Below are positions 7,406 to 41,862 of a stretch of 44,198 nt of DNA, in pieces. The DNA is taken from NCBI RefSeq assembly GCF_001194135.2, contig NC_068992.1, positions 59,247,281 to 59,291,478 of the forward strand. The letters run 5' to 3'. The notes beneath the pieces are model-generated. The model worked only from the letters and a program-made list of their open reading frames with translations, did not search any database and was not told where the DNA came from. This DNA comes from Octopus bimaculoides (lineage: Eukaryota). The position numbers and the translations under genes were made by a program. Within the stretch, counting starts at the first letter, position 1; the number at the start of each line of letters is the position of its first letter.

Positions 7406-9622
7406 TTAATATAAGTTAGCTGATTCAGTGAGGTGTTTGACTTTGTGCGATGTCATCTGTGACAAACCAAGAACAGCAAAGTTGCAATCGTCTTGCATGC
7501 AGTGGTAGTGTGTTTGCTTCTTATATGAAGTACAGGACGGCACACTGCATCCTTCACTGCCGACAAACTTTTGGAACCCATGAGATGCTATTGTCTCCAT
7601 CTTAACATGATGCTTGCGGTGTGCCGTAACTTTGGTTGTGTCTGTGCAAACAAAGTCACATTTCAGACAATGGTAATGCGAAGATTTCGCATCATATTGG
7701 CACTTGTGGTACTGGCATGAGAGACTTGCTCGGAACTGCTTAAAATCTTCCCCAATAATGCTGTCGATCCGTTCATGTCGCAACTTGTGTTGAACGATCC
7801 GTGAACGATCACTAAAACCATAGCCACAATCCTGCCGTCGACAATGGAAGTGCGTTACCATGTGTTTGTATGTACACCGTTGATATTTACAGTCTTCATT
7901 ATATCTTATTCGAATGTAACCTTCTGGTACTCCTTCCGCTCGGTAAGTAGTAAGGGCACTGGTATTACAGGTTTCAGTTTCGGACGGCATCATGAGATGA
8001 GGCTGTTTCCTGTTCACTGTTACTTCGTCTTCAAATTCTTCACTTCCACTTGCTTTCCGTTTCCTGTGAGAACTGTCTAAATACAAGGAATTGTCATCAT
8101 TCTCTTGGTCAATTTCTGACCTCTCTGTTGGAATACTCTCACCAAAAGAATTCATTCCGGAACACATACTGGGAGATCTTCGATCCATGTGACAACCTGT
8201 TGTCAGCCTTGAATCCAAATCAGATGATATTTTCACAGGATTATTTAATCCAGTGGAGAAAGATGAGGCTTTTTCTTCATCCAAGGTTTCTGCTTCTTCA
8301 GTAAAGTTCTTCACATGTTTGGAATTAATACTGAAGTTGCTATTCCCATCGTCAGACAAGTCAGTTGGCAAATTCTCTAACAGTGGGGGTTTAACTACAT
8401 TAGAAAGGAACTTGAGCCCATGCCTGCTCAAGTGATACTGCAATCGGGCACACTCAGAAAATGCTTGGTTACACTGAAGACAATGGTAATGGTCTTTTTT
8501 CTTGAGCTTGCAGAAAGGACGGCCACAATTTTGATACACCGAAAAATGTATTTGGGTCCTGATGCTGTCCCAGTTTTGACATTGAGATGTACTTTCAATC
8601 TTCTTCTGCTGTAAGAGAAATGGTAAAGAAGGAACATCATTACAAGAAGAACTCCCAGATGTCTCAGCAGAACTGCAACTCAGAGAACTAATCTCACTGA
8701 TAAGAGGAATGCTGATATTTACTCTGGGATTAGTAAGGTTACTACTGTTTGACACCAAGGTCTGTGACGGAATGGTAACTGGATATGGCTGGCTGGTAGG
8801 AATTGTAGATAAAGGATAAAATATCCCAGATGATTTGATCACTGCTTTAGTTGAAGAAGGTTGAATGGCTACTTTTGAAACGGCTGGCATGATTGGAACG
8901 TAAGTGGTGAGTTTGGTATTAGTGCATGTGTTGTTGTAGTTGTTGTTGTTTTTGTTATCGTTGTTGTTCGAGGAGTGATTTTGGTGCTTCTTATCATGCT
9001 GAACCATAGTGCTGTGTCTAACAAAAGAATAATCACAATGTGGTCGAGTGCAATGGAAATGTTTGTTTGCTTTGTTATAATGACAGTGATTGTATCGGCA
9101 ATCTACATTGTGGTCGAAGAACTGAAAGCCCTCCAGTATGTTAACAAAACTGTGAAAATCCTTGATGTGCAAATTGAGGACATCCAATCGGTCTGTAGCA
9201 TGGTGACAGCGGGGTTTTGTACAGTGATAATGTTCCTTCATAAAATATAAACACAGTTTGTCAAGACAATTTTGCCCAGCCTTGTAAACCTTGTAACTGT
9301 CAGTTATCGATGATGATGTTGCTGTTGTTGTTGTTGTTGATGTTGTCAGGTTATTTTGAAGGCCACTCACAAAACCATTTTGTTCTTCGCTGAATATTTT
9401 GAAGTGTTCTGAATGCATGGGTTCAAATTTGGTAACAGGTGATATGTCAATGCGGGAATATTTGGGGGGCCGTCCCCGCCGGGGTCTCGTGGCATCGAGG
9501 TCATACTTCACTAAGGATAGCTTTAACTTACTGGCCGTCACTTGGGGGTTGTGTTGGAGCTGGTAATGTTCAAGTCTTGCAAAACTAGCATCAGAGTAAG
9601 ACGTGCTGAAGTTGCAGGCAGA
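7406..9622 (-). CDS. CASZ1: castor/CASZ1 terminal coding exon (end of finger 6, fingers 7-12, AT-hook, PxDLS motif, stop)
   Basis: Acceptor ttttctttcag|TCT, phase 0; 2217 nt = 738 codons plus TAA at 7408-7406. Six further C-x4-C...H[YF]HC...C...H...H castor fingers. The ORF-track start (MGEGTF...) is intronic. Confidence 0.96.
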   Translation of the reverse strand, partial: SACNFSTSYSDASFARLEHYQLQHNPQVTASKLKLSLVKYDLDATRPRRGRPPKYSRIDISPVTKFEPMHSEHFKIFSEEQNGFVSGLQNNLTTSTTTTTATSSSITDSYKVYKAGQNCLDKLCLYFMKEHYHCTKPRCHHATDRLDVLNLHIKDFHSFVNILEGFQFFDHNVDCRYNHCHYNKANKHFHCTRPHCDYSFVRHSTMVQHDKKHQNHSSNNNDNKNNNNYNNTCTNTKLTTYVPIMPAVSKVAIQPSSTKAVIKSSGIFYPLSTIPTSQPYPVTIPSQTLVSNSSNLTNPRVNISIPLISEISSLSCSSAETSGSSSCNDVPSLPFLLQQKKIESTSQCQNWDSIRTQIHFSVYQNCGRPFCKLKKKDHYHCLQCNQAFSECARLQYHLSRHGLKFLSNVVKPPLLENLPTDLSDDGNSNFSINSKHVKNFTEEAETLDEEKASSFSTGLNNPVKISSDLDSRLTTGCHMDRRSPSMCSGMNSFGESIPTERSEIDQENDDNSLYLDSSHRKRKASGSEEFEDEVTVNRKQPHLMMPSETETCNTSALTTYRAEGVPEGYIRIRYNEDCKYQRCTYKHMVTHFHCRRQDCGYGFSDRSRIVQHKLRHERIDSIIGEDFKQFRASLSCQYHKCQYDAKSSHYHCLKCDFVCTDTTKVTAHRKHHVKMETIASHGFQKFVGSEGCSVPSCTSYKKQTHYHCMQDDCNFAVLGLSQMTSHKVKHLTESANLY

Positions 9623-9887
9623 CTGAAAGAAAAAAACCCAAATATTTATGATATTAAACAAAAGAACAAGACAGAATATGATTATATTAAATGTCCCCTC
9701 ACCCAACCTTGTGCAAATAAAGAATTATTATAATTACTATTTGCATAATGTTCCTGACAAACACCCTACTTCATTTTATGCAACTTTTGTCTAATTCCTC
9801 AGAGTTTTGTAAGATCCCAGCCTTAACATTTAATATTTTGTATACATATATGATGGATCTAATTGTCTTCAGCAGACAAATGAAGAA

Positions 9888-12797: not shown

Positions 12798-13342
12798 CTG
12801 GACGGATTACAGAACATAACAGATTAAATAACATACTAGCAAATACATACATACATATATATATATATATNNNNNNNNNNNNNNNNNNNNNNNNNNNNNN
12901 NNNNNNNNNNNNNNNNNNNNNNNNNNNNNNNNNNNNNNNNNNNNNNNNNNNNNNNNNNNNNNNNNNNNNNNNNNNNNNNNNNNNNNNNNNNNNNNNNNNN
13001 NNNNNNNNNNNNNNNNNNNNNNNNNNNNNNNNNNNNNNNNNNNNNNNNNNNNNNNNNNNNNNNNNNNNNNNNNNNNNNNNNNNNNNNNNNNNNNNNNNNN
13101 NNNNNNNNNNNNNNNNNNNNNNNNNNNNNNNNNNNNNNNNNNNNNNNNNNNNNNNNNNNNNNNNNNNNNNNNNNNNNNNNNNNNNNNNNNNNNNNNNNNN
13201 NNNNNNNNNNNNNNNNNNNNNNNNNNNNNNNNNNNNNNNNNNNNNNNNNNNNNNNNNNNNNNNNNNNNNNNNNNNNNNNNNNNNNNNNNNNNNNNNNNNN
13301 NNNNNNNNNNNNNNNNNNNNNNNNNNNNNNNNNNNNNNNNNN

Positions 13343-14322: not shown

Positions 14323-14401
14323 GTGATGGTGATGATAATGACAAAGACAATGATGATGATGTCAATGATGGTGGTGATGATGATGACAAACTATGCCTCA
14401 C

Positions 14402-14852
14402 CTTTTCAGATAGGTTTTCCAGTTTTCATCCTTGTCTCTCCTATCCCCAGCTCTCACCTGTCCAACATTAACAGAATTGCTGTTCATGTTGAGGACAAGA
14501 TGGCTGGTGTAAAGTTCCGACTTGGCACAGTTCACTGGAATCAGTAGGTTGAGAGAGTTGTTCAAAGAATCTCCACTGAGTTTGGAAGCCCTCATGGCCA
14601 GTGTTCCAGAAGGTTCTGCACAAGAAACCGCCATGTTGCAACCGGAATCATCGTCCTTGGGAGATGCAGAGTCTTGACGGAAAGACTGAAACTGAGGTGG
14701 ATGCCGTTTCTCATCCATATAACTGAAATCTTCTTCAATTTTGGCTTCTTTCTTTATACTTTTGATATTAGTCTCTAGAGATATGTTCGAAGAAGCAGTT
14801 TTAAGACACAAAGAATTTGATAAGATTGATTTGTCCAAGCTACTACCACTGC

Positions 14853-14913
<61 letters not shown>

Positions 14914-22738: not shown

Positions 22739-23805
22739 CCTAAATATAGGGGCTGGGTATGAGAGGGTGCTGAAAAGGGTTAAACACGGCCTCTTTAATG
22801 CTCTGAGCTCAAACATATATATATATATATATATATAGACATATATCTATATCTATATATATATATATATATAATAAAGTAAAGTTGTGGAATACCGTAC
22901 GAGTGGAAATATATATGAAAGAAGGTTTGAAAATGCACTTATTTTTAAAAAATATTTATTTACTTAACCGGTTTCACTTTTTTAGAAAAAGATTATCAAA
23001 AGTCTTTGAGAATAATAAAAAATGTTAAAAAACAGTCTGAGTATTAAAATGCATATATACATTCTTTGATGATAAAATATATTTAAAGTATAAAGCTTTG
23101 TATGAACTTTGTAGTGTTACATACTGATTGTCATATTAAGGTGAAATTGTTAAAAACAGTGTATGAAAATACACATATGGAAAAATACATATACATATAC
23201 ATATTCTCATACATATTCTTTGACNNNNNNNNNNNNNNNNNNNNNNNNNNNNNNNNNNNNNNNNNNNNNNNNNNNNNNNNNNNNNNNNNNNNNNNNNNNN
23301 NNNNNNNNNNNNNNNNNNNNNNNNNNNNNNNNNNNNNNNNNNNNNNNNNNNNNNNNNNNNNNNNNNNNNNNNNNNNNNNNNNNNNNNNNNNNNNNNNNNN
23401 NNNNNNNNNNNNNNNNNNNNNNNNNNNNNNNNNNNNNNNNNNNNNNNNNNNNNNNNNNNNNNNNNNNNNNNNNNNNNNNNNNNNNNNNNNNNNNNNNNNN
23501 NNNNNNNNNNNNNNNNNNNNNNNNNNNNNNNNNNNNNNNNNTATATATATATTAACGGGCTTCCCCACAGTTTCTGTCAACTGATTTCACTCACAAAGCA
23601 TTGGCCAGCTCAGAGCTATTTCTAGTAAAGGAGGACATTTGCTGTGTAGTGGGACTGAACCTGAAACTACATGATTGTAAAGCAAACTTCTTAACTACAC
23701 AGCCACTCCTCCACCTATGCTATTTTATAGATCTGATCTTAAAAGATATGTCTAAGTTGACCTCAGAGAGATTTGAGCTCAGAACATTAAAGAGGCTGTG
23801 TTTAA

Positions 23806-25052: not shown

Positions 25053-26484
25053 AATAATAATAATGATGACAATGGTGGTGGTGGNNNNNNNNNNNNNNNN
25101 NNNNNNNNNNNNNNNNNNNNNNNNNNNNNNNNNNNNNNNNNNNNNNNNNNNNNNNNNNNNNNNNNNNNNNNNNNNNNNNNNNNNNNNNNNNNNNNNNNNN
25201 NNNNNNNNNNNNNNNNNNNNNNNNNNNNNNNNNNNNNNNNNNNNNNNNNNNNNNNNNNNNNNNNNNNNNNNNNNNNNNNNNNNNNNNNNNNNNNNNNNNN
25301 NNNNNNNNNNNNNNNNNNNNNNNNNNNNNNNNNNNNNNNNNNNNNNNNNNNNNNNNNNNNNNNNNNNNNNNNNNNNNNNNNNNNNNNNNNNNNNNNNNNN
25401 NNNNNNNNNNNNNNNNNNNNNNNNNNNNNNNNNNNNNNNNNNNNNNNNNNNNNNNNNNNNNNNNNNNNNNNNNNNNNNNNNNNNNNNNNNNNNNNNNNNN
25501 NNNNNNNNNNNNNNNNNNNNNNNNNNNNNNNNNNNNNNNNNNNNNNNNNNNNNNNNNNNNNNNNNNNNNNNNNNNNNNNNNNNNNNNNNNNNNNNNNNNN
25601 NNNNNNNNNNNNNNNNNNNNNNNNNNNNNNNNNNNNNNNNNNNNNNNNNNNNNNNNNNNNNNNNNNNNNNNNNNNNNNNNNNNNNNNNNNNNNNNNNNNN
25701 NNNNNNNNNNNNNNNNNNNNNNNNNNNNNNNNNNNNNNNNNNNNNNNNNNNNNNNNNNNNNNNNNNNNNNNNNNNNNNNNNNNNNNNNNNNNNNNNNNNN
25801 NNNNNNNNNNNNNNNNNNNNNNNNNNNNNNNNNNNNNGTGAGAATGAAATGAAAGAAATATAGAAAAAAAGAAAACGAAGGGGGGGAAGAAGTAAATGAA
25901 GGAAAGAAAAATGGAATAAGAAAAGAGGAAGAGAGAGGAAAGGAGGAATGAAAAGAATGAAAGAAAGAAGGAAAAAAAACTGGATGGAATGAAAGAAAGA
26001 AAAAAAAAAAAAGGAAATAAAAAAAACAAACCAAAGAAACAATAAAAAAATTACATAACCACCACTATTACCATTCTCTCTCCCTCTCTCTCTCTCTGTC
26101 TCTCTACCTTTCTCTCTCTCCCTCTCTCTCTCTCCCTTTCTCTCTCTCTCTTTCTCTCTCACTCTCTCTCTCTCTCCATCAGTCAATCTTTTTTCTGTCC
26201 CTATCTATCCTTCCTTCCCTCTCTCCTTCTGCCCCTCTCTATCCTCGTCTTTCTCTCCTTTTCTTGTTCCTATCTATCTCTCTGCCCCTCTCTTTCTCTT
26301 TCCCTCTCCCCTGCTGCCTCTCTCCCTCTATATATATATCTCTCTCTTTTCCTGTCTCTCCATCTGTCTTTCTTATGTCTCTATCTATCCCTTCCTCTTT
26401 CACTCCCTCTCCCTATCCCTCCTCTGTGTCTATCCTTATCTTTCTCTCCTTTTCTTCTTTCTATCTATCTCACACTCCCTCCCA

Positions 26485-28570: not shown

Positions 28571-29739
28571 CTAATGTTAATTTTTTATCCTTCATATGTT
28601 TTATATTTTTTTATCCATATTTAAAGTTCTTAGTTCAGTATGAAGAGTGATCTGTGCCTGAAAAACGTGTGTGGATTTCCAGACACGTGAACCTATTAGT
28701 AGTGCCCGAAGATATGTACTGTGGTCCTTAAACAGAAATGTTTGACTCTCACCAGATGGAGTGCACTCTTTGTTGAATTATGCCATGAACAAATATATAT
28801 ATATTGCTGNNNNNNNNNNNNNNNNNNNNNNNNNNNNNNNNNNNNNNNNNNNNNNNNNNNNNNNNNNNNNNNNNNNNNNNNNNNNNNNNNNNNNNNNNNN
28901 NNNNNNNNNNNNNNNNNNNNNNNNNNNNNNNNNNNNNNNNNNNNNNNNNNNNNNNNNNNNNNNNNNNNNNNNNNNNNNNNNNNNNNNNNNNNNNNNNNNN
29001 NNNNNNNNNNNNNNNNNNNNNNNNNNNNNNNNNNNNNNNNNNNNNNNNNNNNNNNNNNNNNNNNNNNNNNNNNNNNNNNNNNNNNNNNNNNNNNNNNNNN
29101 NNNNNNNNNNNNNNNNNNNNNNNNNNNNNNNNNNNNNNNNNNNNNNNNNNNNNNNNNNNNNNNNNNNNNNNNNNNNNNNNNNNNNNNNNNNNNNNNNNNN
29201 NNNNNNNNNNNNNNNNNNNNNNNNNNNNNNNNNNNNNNNNNNNNNNNNNNNNNNNNNNNNNNNNNNNNNNNNNNNNNNNNNNNNNNNNNNNNNNNNNNNN
29301 NNNNNNNNNNNNNNNNNNNNNNNNNNNNNNNNNNNNNNNNNNNNNNNNNNNNNNNNNNNNNNNNNNNNNNNNNNNNNNNNNNNNNNNNNNNNNNNNNNNN
29401 NNNNNNNNNNNNNNNNNNNNNNNNNNNNNNNNNNNNNNNNNNNNNNNNNNNNNNNNNNNNNNNNNNNNNNNNNNNNNNNNNNNNNNNNNNNNNNNNNNNN
29501 NNNNNNNNNNNNNNNNNNNNNNNNNNNNNNNNNNNNNNNNNNNNNNNNNNNNNNNNNNNNNNNNNNNNNNNNNNNNNNNNNNNNNNNNNNNNNNNNNNNN
29601 NNNNNNNNNNNNNNNNNNNNNNNNNNNNNNNNNNNNNNNNNNNNNNNNNNNNNNNNNNNNNNNNNNNNNNNNNNNNNNNNNNNNNNNNNNNNNNNNNNNN
29701 NNNNNNNNNNNNNNNNNNNNNNNNNNNNNNNNNNNNNNN

Positions 29740-29782
<43 letters not shown>

Positions 29783-34613: not shown

Positions 34614-34904
34614 CTGAAAAACTCAGATATACATCTACAATATATAAACAAATGGTCAACAAATTATTTGCCAGAGACCCCAAGTCAGTCTATCGCAACT
34701 TCGATGCAATTTCTATAACAGACACACACACACACACACACAAAACAAAGGAACAGGCTGAGGGTTACTGGAGATCTGTATGGGAAACAATGGATCAATA
34801 CAACAAACAAGCTGTATGGTGAAAAGAAGTGGAGCATGACTACTGCATGCATTATTTACATTATTTACATTTGATGGATATTTGTCCTCATCTTGTTTGT
34901 TGTT

Positions 34905-34950
34905 AACACGACGTTTTGGCTGATATACCCTCCAGCCTTCATCAGATGTC
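34905..34950 (-). ncRNA. Minimal type-I hammerhead ribozyme motif (inverted left arm; G12A core change)
   Basis: Minus strand reads gacat-CTGATGA-a-ggctg[gagggtatat]cagcc-AAAA-cgt-c-gtgtt. Stem III ACGU and the GUC cleavage triplet are intact, but G12 is A. Confidence 0.75.
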
Positions 34951-35186
34951 TTGGGGGAAATTTCGAACCTGAGTTCTCATTCCTAAGGTATTTTTTGATG
35001 TTATGCCTGTGAACATATGCCCACAGGCATATAGCTTAGTGGTTAAGAGCGCAGGCTACTAACCCCAAGATTCCGAGTTCAATGCTAAGCAGTGACCTGA
35101 ATAATAATAATAATAATAATAATATCAACAACAACAACATTGAGAAGTATCTTAGGAATGAGAACCCAGATTCAAAATTTCCCCAA

Positions 35187-35232
35187 GACACCTGATGAAG
35201 GCTGAAGGATATATCAGCCGAAACATTGTGTT
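35187..35232 (+). ncRNA. Minimal type-I hammerhead ribozyme motif (right arm of palindromic SINE-like element)
   Basis: gacac-CTGATGA-a-ggctga[aggatata]tcagcc-GAAA-cat-t-gtgtt. Core intact, 6-bp stem II, stem I gacac/gtgtt; the palindromic stem III ACGU has decayed to ACAU. Confidence 0.8.
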
Positions 35233-36160
35233 AACAACAAACAAGATGAGGACAAATATCCGTCAAATGTAAATAATGTAAATACTGTACATAATTCCTC
35301 ATCTCTTAAATATAGACCTGTACTGCATGCATGTTCAGCAAAAGCAGCATGAAACAGATGGTGACAACACTTCAATTCCTATCTGCTTGAGATTCTTCCT
35401 CATCTACCATGATCATGAGGCATATCTAACTCTGAAAATCAAGCAACATGGCAAAACAGTCCAAGACAACCCTCCCAAATCATACAAGTAACAGGACACG
35501 TCCCAGTTTTATGAGTAAGGTTTGGCTACAAAATCAGACAATGGAATCCAATAATTTTGCAGAGTGTCCTGTTACCAAAGGTGTCCAGGCAGCTCTTACA
35601 GGATTATTTCCCTTTATAGATGGCTCTGAGGATCACATCTCACTCACACATACATTTCATTTGGCCTGGTTATCTATGACAGGAAGCCGTTCCTAACACC
35701 AACCACTTTACAAGGTGTACTGGATGAATTTGGGACCTCAGCATGACAGACATGTTGGCAAGGCATGAACTAAGGGACTTTCTTTATACTAAATCATCTC
35801 AGTTCAACCAAGGTAGAGAATGGTGGGGAGGCTGATTAGATGAGTTTGGATGTAAACGGAAGAGGTTACACAGAGTAAATAGTTGAAGTAATGGAAGAGA
35901 GACAAAGATAGGCAGCTTCATGAGTGAATGTAGCAGTGTATTTGTGTGGATGTGTATATGTGTGTGTGTGTGTCTCAGTGTGAGCATGTGAATGCGTGTG
36001 TGTGCTTGAGTGTGAGCTTGTGAATGCACGTGTCTATGAGTGTGTGCCTATGGGATGAAGTCATGGAAGAGAGACAAAGATAGGCAGCTTCATGAGTGAA
36101 TGTCAGTATGTTTGTGTGGGTGTTTATATGTGCATATGTCTGAGTGTGTGCATGTATATA

Positions 36161-39035: not shown

Positions 39036-40023
39036 TATATATATATATATATATATATNNNNNNNNNNNNNNNNNNNNNNNNNNNNNNNNNNNNNNNNNN
39101 NNNNNNNNNNNNNNNNNNNNNNNNNNNNNNNNNNNNNNNNNNNNNNNNNNNNNNNNNNNNNNNNNNNNNNNNNNNNNNNNNNNNNNNNNNNNNNNNNNNN
39201 NNNNNNNNNNNNNNNNNNNNNNNNNNNNNNNNNNNNNNNNNNNNNNNNNNNNNNNNNNNNNNNNNNNNNNNNNNNNNNNNNNNNNNNNNNNNNNNNNNNN
39301 NNNNNNNNNNNNNNNNNNNNNNNNNNNNNNNNNNNNNNNNNNNNNNNNNNNNNNNNNNNNNNNNNNNNNNNNNNNNNNNNNNNNNNNNNNNNNNNNNNNN
39401 NNNNNNNNNNNNNNNNNNNNNNNNNNNNNNNNNNNNNNNNNNNNNNNNNNNNNNNNNNNNNNNNNNNNNNNNNNNNNNNNNNNNNNNNNNNNNNNNNNNN
39501 NNNNNNNNNNNNNNNNNNNNNNNNNNNNNNNNNNNNNNNNNNNNNNNNNNNNNNNNNNNNNNNNNNNNNNNNNNNNNNNNNNNNNNNNNNNNNNNNNNNN
39601 NNNNNNNNNNNNNNNNNNNNNNNNNNNNNNNNNNNNNNNNNNNNNNNNNNNNNNNNNNNNNNNNNNNNNNNNNNNNNNNNNNNNNNNNNNNNNNNNNNNN
39701 NNNNNNNNNNNNNNNNNNNNNNNNNNNNNNNNNNNNNNNNNNNNNNNNNNNNNNNNNNNNNNNNNNNNNNNNNNNNNNNNNNNNNNNNNNNNNNNNNNNN
39801 NNNNNNNNNNNNNNNNNNNNNNNNNNNNNNNNNNNNNNNNNNNNNNNNNNNNNNNNNNNNNNNNNNNNNNNNNNNNNNNNNNNNNNNNNNNNNNNNNNNN
39901 NNNNNNNNNNNNNNNNNNNNNNNNNNNNNNNNNNNNNNNNNNNNNNNNNNNNNNNNNNNNNNNNNNNNNNNNNNNNNNNNNNNNNNNNNNNNNNNNATGC
40001 CTCTATATATATATATACATATA

Positions 40024-40486: not shown

Positions 40487-41697
40487 GGAAAGATGGATAG
40501 ATAGATAGATAGATATACATACATATATATATATATATATATACATGTATGTATGTATGTATATATGTATCTTTTTCCTTCCTGTTCTTCAACGTAACTG
40601 TACCTACCTCCAGTGTATGAGCTATTTTGGATAAGCCATAATAGCATTACCACCACTACCACTAATACTACTACTACTACTAGTAGTAGTAGTAGTAGTA
40701 GTAGTAGCTTTAATTTTTTTTTTCCGATCCCCCAAACCATATAATTATCTTCGTGAAATCAAAATACCGAAATATTTCTGAAAAGGTTGTTTTGGGGGGA
40801 ACGGACTTCATTATGCATGTTGTCGGCATCGACACCAGCCCCCCCACCAACCACTACCACCACCCTTCCCCACCATATTTATACACTTTATTTATTTTTG
40901 TTTGGCTGTGTNNNNNNNNNNNNNNNNNNNNNNNNNNNNNNNNNNNNNNNNNNNNNNNNNNNNNNNNNNNNNNNNNNNNNNNNNNNNNNNNNNNNNNNNN
41001 NNNNNNNNNNNNNNNNNNNNNNNNNNNNNNNNNNNNNNNNNNNNNNNNNNNNNNNNNNNNNNNNNNNNNNNNNNNNNNNNNNNNNNNNNNNNNNNNNNNN
41101 NNNNNNNNNNNNNNNNNNNNNNNNNNNNNNNNNNNNNNNNNNNNNNNNNNNNNNNNNNNNNNNNNNNNNNNNNNNNNNNNNNNNNNNNNNNNNNNNNNNN
41201 NNNNNNNNNNNNNNNNNNNNNNNNNNNNNNNNNNNNNNNNNNNNNNNNNNNNNNNNNNNNNNNNNNNNNNNNNNNNNNNNNNNNNNNNNNNNNNNNNNNN
41301 NNNNNNNNNNNNNNNNNNNNNNNNNNNNNNNNNNNNNNNNNNNNNNNNNNNNNNNNNNNNNNNNNNNNNNNNNNNNNNNNNNNNNNNNNNNNNNNNNNNN
41401 NNNNNNNNNNNNNNNNNNNNNNNNNNNNNNNNNNNNNNNNNNNNNNNNNNNNNNNNNNNNNNNNNNNNNNNNNNNNNNNNNNNNNNNNNNNNNNNNNNNN
41501 NNNNNNNNNNNNNNNNNNNNNNNNNNNNNNNNNNNNNNNNNNNNNNNNNNNNNNNNNNNNNNNNNNNNNNNNNNNNNNNNNNNNNNNNNNNNNNNNNNNN
41601 NNNNNNNNNNNNNNNNNNNNNNNNNNNNNNNNNNNNNNNNNNNNNNNNNNNNNNNNNNNNNNNNNNNNNNNNNNNNNNNNNNNNNNNNNNTATATAT

Positions 41698-41862
41698 ATG
41701 ACAGGCTTCTTTCAGTTTCCGTCTACTAAATCCACTCAAAAGGCTTTGGTTGGCCCGAGGCTATAGTAGAAGACACTTGCCCAAAGTGCCACGCAGTGGG
41801 ACTGAACCCAGAGCCATGTGGTTGGTAAGCAAGGTACTTATCACACAGCCACTCCTGCGCCT
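41698..41862 (-). mobile_element. Family C SINE
   Basis: gacaggcttctttcagtttccgtctac...ctatagtagaagacacttgccc...cacacagccactcctgcgcc. Confidence 0.85.

Follow-up and report, generated by a model that had tools for sequence, protein, structure and literature searches.

The window analyzed here is a 44,198-nt stretch of the Octopus bimaculoides genome (NCBI RefSeq assembly GCF_001194135.2, contig NC_068992.1, positions 59,247,281 to 59,291,478, forward strand), and the subject of this work is a 468-bp segment of it that lies between two exact copies of the 12-mer TACTGCATGCAT. The 12-mer occurs at two sites in the 44-kb window, namely those that bound the segment, and is expected by chance at none. 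We conclude that the 468 bp between the target-site duplications (TSDs) is a genuine retrotransposon insertion. The insertion is likely to be a non-autonomous element of the kind of a short interspersed element (SINE), composed of an RNA polymerase III (Pol III)-like promoter head and a hammerhead module of Penelope-like-element (PLE) type, and to have been inserted by PLE machinery. The coordinates of its parts are collected in Table 1.

The insertion is nearly palindromic and contains two copies of one 3′ module in opposite orientations. The two arms (34853-35002 and 35136-35284) align with 134 matches, 15 mismatches and one indel (p-distance 0.10). The inverted, 5′-truncated copy (34853-35016) adjoins the direct copy (35017-35284), and positions 35002-35016 mirror positions 35017-35031 at 13/15 positions about a centre between 35016 and 35017. 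The left copy accordingly reads from the mirrored first ~15 nt of the leader straight into the module; 104 nt of head and microsatellite, the latter comprising (AAT)8 at 35100-35123 and (CAA)4 at 35126-35137, are missing from it. The right copy continues for an additional 36 nt (35285-35320) before the TSD, and the left copy has no such extension. The initial annotation had noted neither this asymmetry nor the mirrored leader in the left copy. The initial annotation of this locus, a reading of the sequence by itself, had reported a 12-bp TSD on both sides, inverted arms of ~150 bp with hammerheads, a small hairpin at the inversion junction, and Pol III-like A and B boxes with (AAT)n between the arms, and each of these features was found as described: the TSD copies are exact and form a unique pair in the window, the arms are 90% identical and carry one minimal hammerhead each, the hairpin is the 13/15 mirror at the junction, and the boxes and (AAT)n are present at the positions given for them.

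A direct repeat around long inverted arms is also what would be left by a DNA transposon resembling a miniature inverted-repeat transposable element (MITE), with terminal inverted repeats of ~150 bp and a TSD, in which case the hammerhead and the A and B boxes would be fortuitous. We consider this very improbable. The ends of the insertion are asymmetric, with 36 extra nt on one side, such that the terminal inverted repeats are not symmetric up to both TSDs; the hammerhead and the A/B motifs both lie well beyond chance expectation; and the relatives of the element, described below, occur as monomers, as copies with variable 5′ truncations, and as head-to-tail arrays. A TSD of 12 bp is, in addition, long for a cut-and-paste element. 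The MITE reading was rejected.

All 15 mismatches between the arms are transitions, with no transversions; at least five are at CpG, both hammerhead lesions among them, and the A/G differences are clustered at the inner end of the arm (35136-35150). Self-BLAST of the window returned microsatellite matches only, with no copies of the arm or head elsewhere in it. The flanks of the element (34652-34822 and 35327-35491) contain a decayed-looking reading frame that is continuous when the flanks are joined (…YNKQAVW*KEVEHDYCMHVQQKQ…) and that possibly derives from an old retrotransposon; ~100 bp upstream there is an (AC)n run.

Table 1. Parts of the 468-bp insertion and its target-site duplications (window coordinates).
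Feature	Coordinates	Strand	Basis
Left TSD, TACTGCATGCAT	34841..34852		exact 12-mer
Inverted copy of the 3′ module, without tail	34853..35002	- (sense strand)	90% identity to reverse complement of 35136-35284; abuts TSD directly
Left-copy minimal type-I hammerhead; G12A (AAAA for GAAA), ACGU-C intact	34905..34950	-	sequence reading and descriptor scan
Inverted start of head leader (first 14-15 nt), left half of junction palindrome	35003..35016	-	mirror 13/15
5′ leader and Pol III-promoter-like head	35017..35099	+	A/B box pattern
Internal microsatellites (AAT)8, AT, (CAA)4	35100..35137	+	sequence reading; missing from left copy
Direct copy of the 3′ module: body, hammerhead, upstream (no-tail) end point	35136..35284	+	homology to left arm and family B
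Right-copy minimal type-I hammerhead; core intact, helix III ACGU to ACAU	35187..35232	+	sequence reading and descriptor scan
36-nt tail CTGTACATAATTCCTCATCTCTTAAATATAGACCTG, right end only	35285..35320	+	no left-copy counterpart; resembles family-B tail
Right TSD, TACTGCATGCAT	35321..35332		exact 12-mer

Hammerhead motifs and promoter-like head

Each arm contains, in order, a 5-bp helix I, CUGAUGA, an unpaired A, helix II, GAAA, C-G, U, H17, and the second side of helix I. The right hammerhead reads GACAC CTGATGA A GGCTGA-AGGATATA-TCAGCC GAAA CAT T GTGTT, and the left hammerhead, on the opposite strand, reads GACAT CTGATGA A GGCTGG-AGGGTATA-TCAGCC AAAA CGT C GTGTT. Helix I (GACAC/GUGUU) has 5 bp, one of them G-U; helix II (GGCUGA/UCAGCC) has 6 bp, with G10.1-C11.1 first, and is closed by an 8-nt loop. 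Loop 3 is lacking, and positions 15.2-16.2 are palindromic, such that helix III is predicted to form in a dimer only: ACGU in the left arm, ACAU in the right arm (one CpG transition), and ACGU in 25/31 sequences of family B, a related family from another mollusc that is described in the next section. The catalytic core (C3 U4 G5 A6 N7 G8 A9 ... G12 A13 A14) is intact in the right copy and carries G12A in the left copy. The initial annotation had noted that the arms differ in their lesions, G12A in the left and ACGU to ACAU in the right, and we find the same. A lesion-tolerant descriptor of minimal hammerheads matches two sites in the window, which are the two arm hammerheads, as compared to 0.003 expected per window. 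Judged by motif, the arm hammerheads fit the published consensus for PLE minimal hammerheads feature by feature (PMC4209133), and they may be, or derive from, active ribozymes.

Structure statistics were obtained from an alignment of 31 distinct hammerheads comprising those of the window element and those of family B. The core positions are conserved in 28-31 of the 31 sequences, over the two families. Helix II is 92% paired, with a single compensatory change in which U-A of the window element is replaced by C-G in family B, the helix III positions are 94% paired, and helix I, which has only 3 bp in family B, is 61% paired. Pattern scans gave no match in viral contigs and 10 matches in metagenomes, all of them unrelated hammerheads (phage- or bacterial-looking forms with a helix III hairpin, and three other minimal hammerheads). 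A separate open reading frame (ORF) of 657 aa, P0001, from a representative library, runs through tandem repeats of ~150 nt that encode …PPEHLMRSV… and that represent another hammerhead-like repeat family (CUGAUGAG…).

The predicted cleavage site of the right hammerhead falls after position 35227; from there the sequence runs on for 57 nt to the no-tail end and for 93 nt to the tail end. The initial annotation had proposed that self-cleavage makes the 3′ end of the element; with both ends lying this far beyond the predicted cut, we rejected that proposal. Because the copies extend past the cleavage site, the template RNA was uncleaved at this ribozyme when it was copied.

The head contains an A box, TAGCTTAGTGG, at 35032-35042 and a B-box-like motif, GTTCAATGC, at 35077-35085, 45 nt apart from start to start. 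The pattern TRGCNNAGTGG-N25-50-GWTCRANNC has this single match in the window and was matched in 0/500 shuffles. The tail-bearing copy has this A/B pair, which resembles a type-2 Pol III promoter, at its 5′ end and reads in the same direction; judged from these motifs, the element may be transcribed by Pol III. The 3′ part consists of the hammerhead module and a PLE-type tail, has no A-run, and is not derived from a long interspersed element (LINE); with this 3′ part and with integration scars of PLE type, the element does depart, as first suggested, from the LINE-tailed design of SINEs. The sense strand of the element contains no T4 run, and the first T4 is 187 nt downstream; a Pol III transcript would therefore run into the flank, which is immaterial if reverse transcriptase (RT) starts internally.

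A related family in another mollusc

Relatives were sought by translating the arm and searching protein sequences with it. Its antisense frame gave no candidates in this protein-space search. The sense frame matched an O. bimaculoides protein, XP_052830334.1, with 84% identity over 25 aa, and a profile built on the sense frame retrieved 762 ORFs, among which are hundreds of ORF-called copies of a family, here termed family B, with conserved body, hammerhead and tail. Seven family-B loci were read, six from ENA assembly ERZ21867824 and one from GCA_041192925.1. The host of family B is a mollusc, and is probably a non-octopod cephalopod, as suggested by a sulfotransferase gene neighbouring family B, which shares 57% identity with the O. 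bimaculoides sulfotransferase and no more than 48% with those of named gastropods and bivalves.

XP_052830334.1 (LOC128249831 isoform X2) is a predicted protein whose start codon lies within the CUGAUGA box, at the AUG, of a further copy of the module, and the coding sequence appears to exit the module at AT/GTAAAT, which is splice-donor-like. The SINE would on this reading have been exonised as a first exon.

The family-B unit is ~345 nt in length and opens with a leader, which is followed by the A-box-like TRGCRTAACGG and the perfect B box GGTTCAATCC; then come the body, the hammerhead (AAACAC CUGAAGA A GGCCGG...CGGCC GAAACGUU GUGG), ...CCTTAATGA and an optional tail (TAAAAATCAnCAAGCTTCGTCTCAGAAATTTAGACAAC). 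Of ~124 family-B ORFs, ~71 extend to the end of the tail and ~24 depart from the family sequence ~35 nt before that point. Copies occur as monomers, as variably 5′-truncated copies and as head-to-tail arrays, and head and module are linked in dispersed, independent copies. Four of the seven loci hold inverted dimers; each of these lacks the tail on its inverted copy, carries it on its direct copy and is bounded by a TSD of 9-13 bp. At one locus (L016:2281-9570) a single 7.3-kb insertion, within a single 11-bp TSD (AAATCCTCTTT), joins an inverted copy without tail to a direct copy and another 53 modules of 129 nt; the resulting array of 54 tandem units, which are 92% alike, could reflect rolling-circle copying or reuse of the template several times during one event, or could have expanded later.

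The module of the window element is 72-84% identical to family-B copies at four of these loci (L011-L014) over 68-107 nt. The tails are also alike: the window tail TCATCTCTTAAATATAGAC and the family-B tail TCGTCTCAGAAATTTAGAC match at 16/19 positions (shuffle p=0.007) and stand at equal distance from the end.

Two further observations were made at these loci. A variant module subfamily, with a different loop 2, helix I UCAC/GUGA and A at H17, lies at L013:10384-10486 (-), tail-to-tail with a family-B copy ~230 nt apart. A second SINE-like head, with A- and B-box-like motifs, lies at L015:600-753 beside a tail-less family-B copy, and its likeness to the window head is marginal (p = 0.017).

Penelope-type scars, proposed mechanism and rival explanations

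PLE insertions often show an inverted, 5′-truncated copy adjoining the element, together with a tail of 30-40 bp that just one of the ends bears (PMC8557442). This tail corresponds to the sequence separating two neighbouring internal RT start sites, and the PLE enzyme cuts and extends both DNA strands (PMC11167929). By its arrangement, the combination in the window of an inverted, 5′-truncated copy, a one-sided 36-nt tail and a 12-bp TSD matches this published signature (PMC8557442, PMC11167929), and copying of an uncleaved template is consistent with PLE RT initiation at two internal sites and with the normal insertion of hammerhead mutants in vitro (PMC11167929). The proposal of the initial annotation that this is a ribozyme SINE mobilized by PLEs is largely supported by the scars, the tail, the TSD and the related family, with Pol III transcription, the PLE partner acting in trans and ribozyme activity as the parts of it that we infer.

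According to the mechanism we propose, the unit is 35017-35320 (+), consisting of leader and head, microsatellite, a ~150-nt 3′ module with the minimal hammerhead, and the 36-nt tail, and its RNA would have been inserted by the RT and GIY-YIG endonuclease of a PLE. A staggered cut, recorded as the 12-bp TSD, would let both strands prime RT, each at one of two adjacent internal sites on the template. Copying from the downstream start site would yield the direct copy, with tail, copying from the upstream site would yield the inverted copy, without tail, and the two complementary DNAs would join at the RNA 5′ end, between 35016 and 35017. In the left copy, the 104 nt of head and microsatellite would have been skipped by RT or deleted later. 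With RT of a PLE initiating internally on the RNA, the element would require no poly(A), LINE tail or Pol III terminator of its own. The hammerhead would be part of the module that RT recognizes and not the maker of the 3′ end; in tandem module arrays, its dimers could cleave multimers in the manner of retrozymes.

Several results weigh against a PLE-dependent ribozyme SINE, and those that concern the ribozyme come first. Both hammerheads in the window carry a lesion. In the 31 aligned hammerheads no measure of covariation is above column shuffles; the initial annotation had named core conservation and stem covariation together among its tests, and of the two, the core is kept and the covariation does not exceed chance. 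Covariation thus leaves the fold unproven, and the case for it is made by context and by agreement with an established motif. The Rfam hammerhead models, which the initial annotation had proposed as a check, gave no match on the window at gathering thresholds and none on 34700-35450 at E<=10. Clear family-B copies and the 54-unit array also went unmatched by them, and the negative on the window consequently says little about loop-less hammerheads. In the minimum-free-energy fold of the 46-nt motif, pairing of UGAU with the 3′ side is favoured over the hammerhead fold, a result that is uninformative for a ribozyme that depends on dimers and is assisted by protein.

An alternative is that the hammerhead-like motif does not work, being either a fold bound by PLE protein or a decaying relic, and that the element spread without cleavage. 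PLE hammerhead mutants insert normally in vitro, and no reads in vivo end at the cleavage site (PMC11167929); minimal hammerheads cleave poorly in vitro (PMC4209133); covariation is not significant, and family-B helix I has 3 bp; and the copies run beyond the cleavage site. Set against this are the core positions, kept in nearly all sequences across two families, the paired helix II with its compensatory change, and the tandem arrays of 129-nt units, which are the arrangement for dimeric action of minimal hammerheads (PMC7229834). On balance we consider a non-working motif unlikely, though well within the range of outcomes that would not surprise us.

A second group of adverse results concerns the head. 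ARAGORN detected no tRNA cloverleaf in the window at default or lowered thresholds (-ps80), and Rfam gave no tRNA match on the window at gathering thresholds or on 34700-35450 at E<=10, its matches being chance ones; the tRNA-SINE of the initial annotation is thus weakly supported, with the A and B boxes present and no cloverleaf or tRNA homology detectable. Similarity between the window head and the family-B head is marginal (p = 0.004-0.09). For octopus, the window copy is the sole evidence that head and module are linked: the left copy is headless, and the one further octopus copy seen in the protein-space search is module only. Furthermore, a 5-bp repeat, AACAT (35012-35016 and 35136-35140), flanks 35017-35135, a segment that ends in (AAT)n/(CAA)n resembling a SINE tail.

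The last of these could arise if an inverted pair of 5′-truncated 3′ fragments of a PLE or retrozyme had formed first and its centre had later been hit by a small, unrelated tRNA-type SINE. In favour of that account, AACAT brackets the 119-nt head and microsatellite, the head is missing from the left copy, no other head-bearing octopus copy was seen by self-BLAST of the window or in the protein-space searches, and the likeness of the window and family-B heads is weak. Simple-repeat tails are, moreover, common in SINEs. However, the left side mirrors, at 13/15 positions and exactly about the junction, the first 15 nt of the supposed insert, a likeness with a chance of ~1e-6 by a binomial estimate, and a later SINE insertion leaves this mirrored leader unexplained. 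In addition, the head stands 5′ of the tail-bearing copy in the same orientation, and a Pol III-like head stands 5′ of a like module in independent family-B copies. We regard chance nesting as improbable and retain the reading of head and module as one unit.

The remaining adverse results concern the machinery. No autonomous PLE that carries the module was found: Pfam detected no RT or GIY-YIG domain in the large ORFs of the window and the loci, and the matches to the module reading frame in the protein-space search include no long RT-type protein.

Relation to known systems and implications

The minimal hammerheads of PLE pseudo-long terminal repeats (pseudo-LTRs; Cervera & de la Pena 2014, PMC4209133; Lunse et al. 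2017) have the same motif architecture as the window motifs in every listed feature. They are expected to act as dimers; pairs of them 100-700 bp apart on opposite strands were noted in 2014, and thousands of dispersed copies were described as "probably related to truncated PLEs" (PMC4209133). Unlike truncated PLEs, the window element has a Pol III-like 5′ head and has no RT-coding sequence, and, unlike the dispersed copies, its module is common to a large head-bearing family in another mollusc.

With the integration products of PLEs (Craig et al. 2021, PMC8557442; Frangieh et al. 2024, PMC11167929), which also include pseudo-LTR tandems, the element shares the inverted copy beside the direct copy and the one-sided tail, and family B likewise has two discrete 3′ ends ~35 nt apart. 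In an Anolis PLE, RT starts 111-118 bp into the ORF, downstream of the hammerhead cut at 26 bp (PMC11167929), and the ends of the window element are likewise downstream of the cut. The window element differs from PLEs in that it has no ORF and a unit of <350 nt, and it would rely on a PLE enzyme acting in trans.

Among non-autonomous elements, the SINE-like retroposons SMalpha and Sjalpha of schistosomes carry a hammerhead (Ferbeyre et al. 1998; Laha et al. 2000; as cited in PMC8490949). They resemble the present elements in being short, dispersed and tandem, non-autonomous, and SINE-like with a type-I hammerhead. The SMalpha hammerhead is, however, canonical, with loop-loop contacts and helix III, whereas that of the window element is the loop-less minimal form of PLE type, and the window element shows explicit PLE insertion scars and has a cephalopod host. 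The original descriptions of SMalpha and Sjalpha reportedly also include Pol III A and B boxes.

Metazoan non-LTR retrozymes have been proposed to depend on PLEs (Cervera & de la Pena 2020, PMC7229834; Li et al. 2026, bioRxiv 10.64898/2026.07.22.740005), and a curation guide allows that retrozymes may count as a new SINE type (PMC8969392). They, like the present elements, are non-autonomous hammerhead repeats, and family B has its own 54-unit array of 129-nt modules; in contrast, the window element is a single inverted pair with no tandem and could not release a circle. Retrozymes have not been described with a Pol III head, and classical ones carry canonical, not minimal, hammerheads. With tRNA-derived SINEs the element shares a 5′ A/B head, a length of a few hundred nt, TSDs and 5′ truncation; it differs from those that depend on LINEs in having a 3′ part that is not LINE-derived, no poly(A) or LINE-type terminal repeat, PLE scars, and no recognizable cloverleaf. 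In O. vulgaris, a repeat annotation of 2026 records Penelope families with recent activity along with ~900 SINE families left unclassified, and ribozymes go unmentioned in it (PMC13282606).

The novelty that the initial annotation had assigned to the element does not hold as stated: SMalpha and Sjalpha (1998-2000), dual minimal hammerheads (2014) and the proposal of PLE-dependent retrozymes (2020-2026) came earlier. The combination of a Pol III-headed element, a PLE hammerhead module and PLE scars is not described in the literature searched, a search with Repbase and Dfam outside its scope.

Elsewhere in the window, a 766-aa ORF with repeated HYHC-type Cys/His motifs and no Pfam match lies at 7406-9706 (-) and is, by its sequence, probably a large exon of a zinc-finger gene; a second coding-looking stretch, broken by an N gap, lies at 14398-14900 (-). 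Frequent N runs bordered by (TA)n/(TATG)n microsatellites (e.g. 12900-13300, 23200-23500, 25100-25800, 28800-29750, 39050-40000 and 40900-41700) mark this as a draft scaffold whose gaps fall at simple repeats.

SINEs are defined as dependants of LINEs. From the window element and family B together we advance, tentatively and with slightly less than even confidence, a broader proposal, which was not met in the literature searched: that one class of Pol III-headed SINEs in cephalopod genomes depends on PLEs and not on LINEs; that a module of ~130 nt, comprising the minimal hammerhead, the RT start region and the tail, recruits an internal RT start and needs no defined 3′ end; and that the same module in tandem behaves as a retrozyme, which can yield arrays of several kb in a single insertion. 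If true, the proposal would connect SINEs and retrozymes with the dispersed "orphan" minimal hammerheads that number thousands in animal genomes. A family combining a Pol III head, the PLE hammerhead module and PLE scars would account for some of the very numerous unclassified octopus SINEs and for orphan minimal hammerheads. It would also provide a concrete case of PLE enzymes working in trans on a Pol III transcript, and a short natural template (~130 nt) with which to dissect PLE RT recognition and the role of the hammerhead. Finally, the long inverted dimers would, if transcribed, form perfect double-stranded RNA hairpins (-244 kcal/mol by computed fold), which bears on animals with heavy RNA editing.

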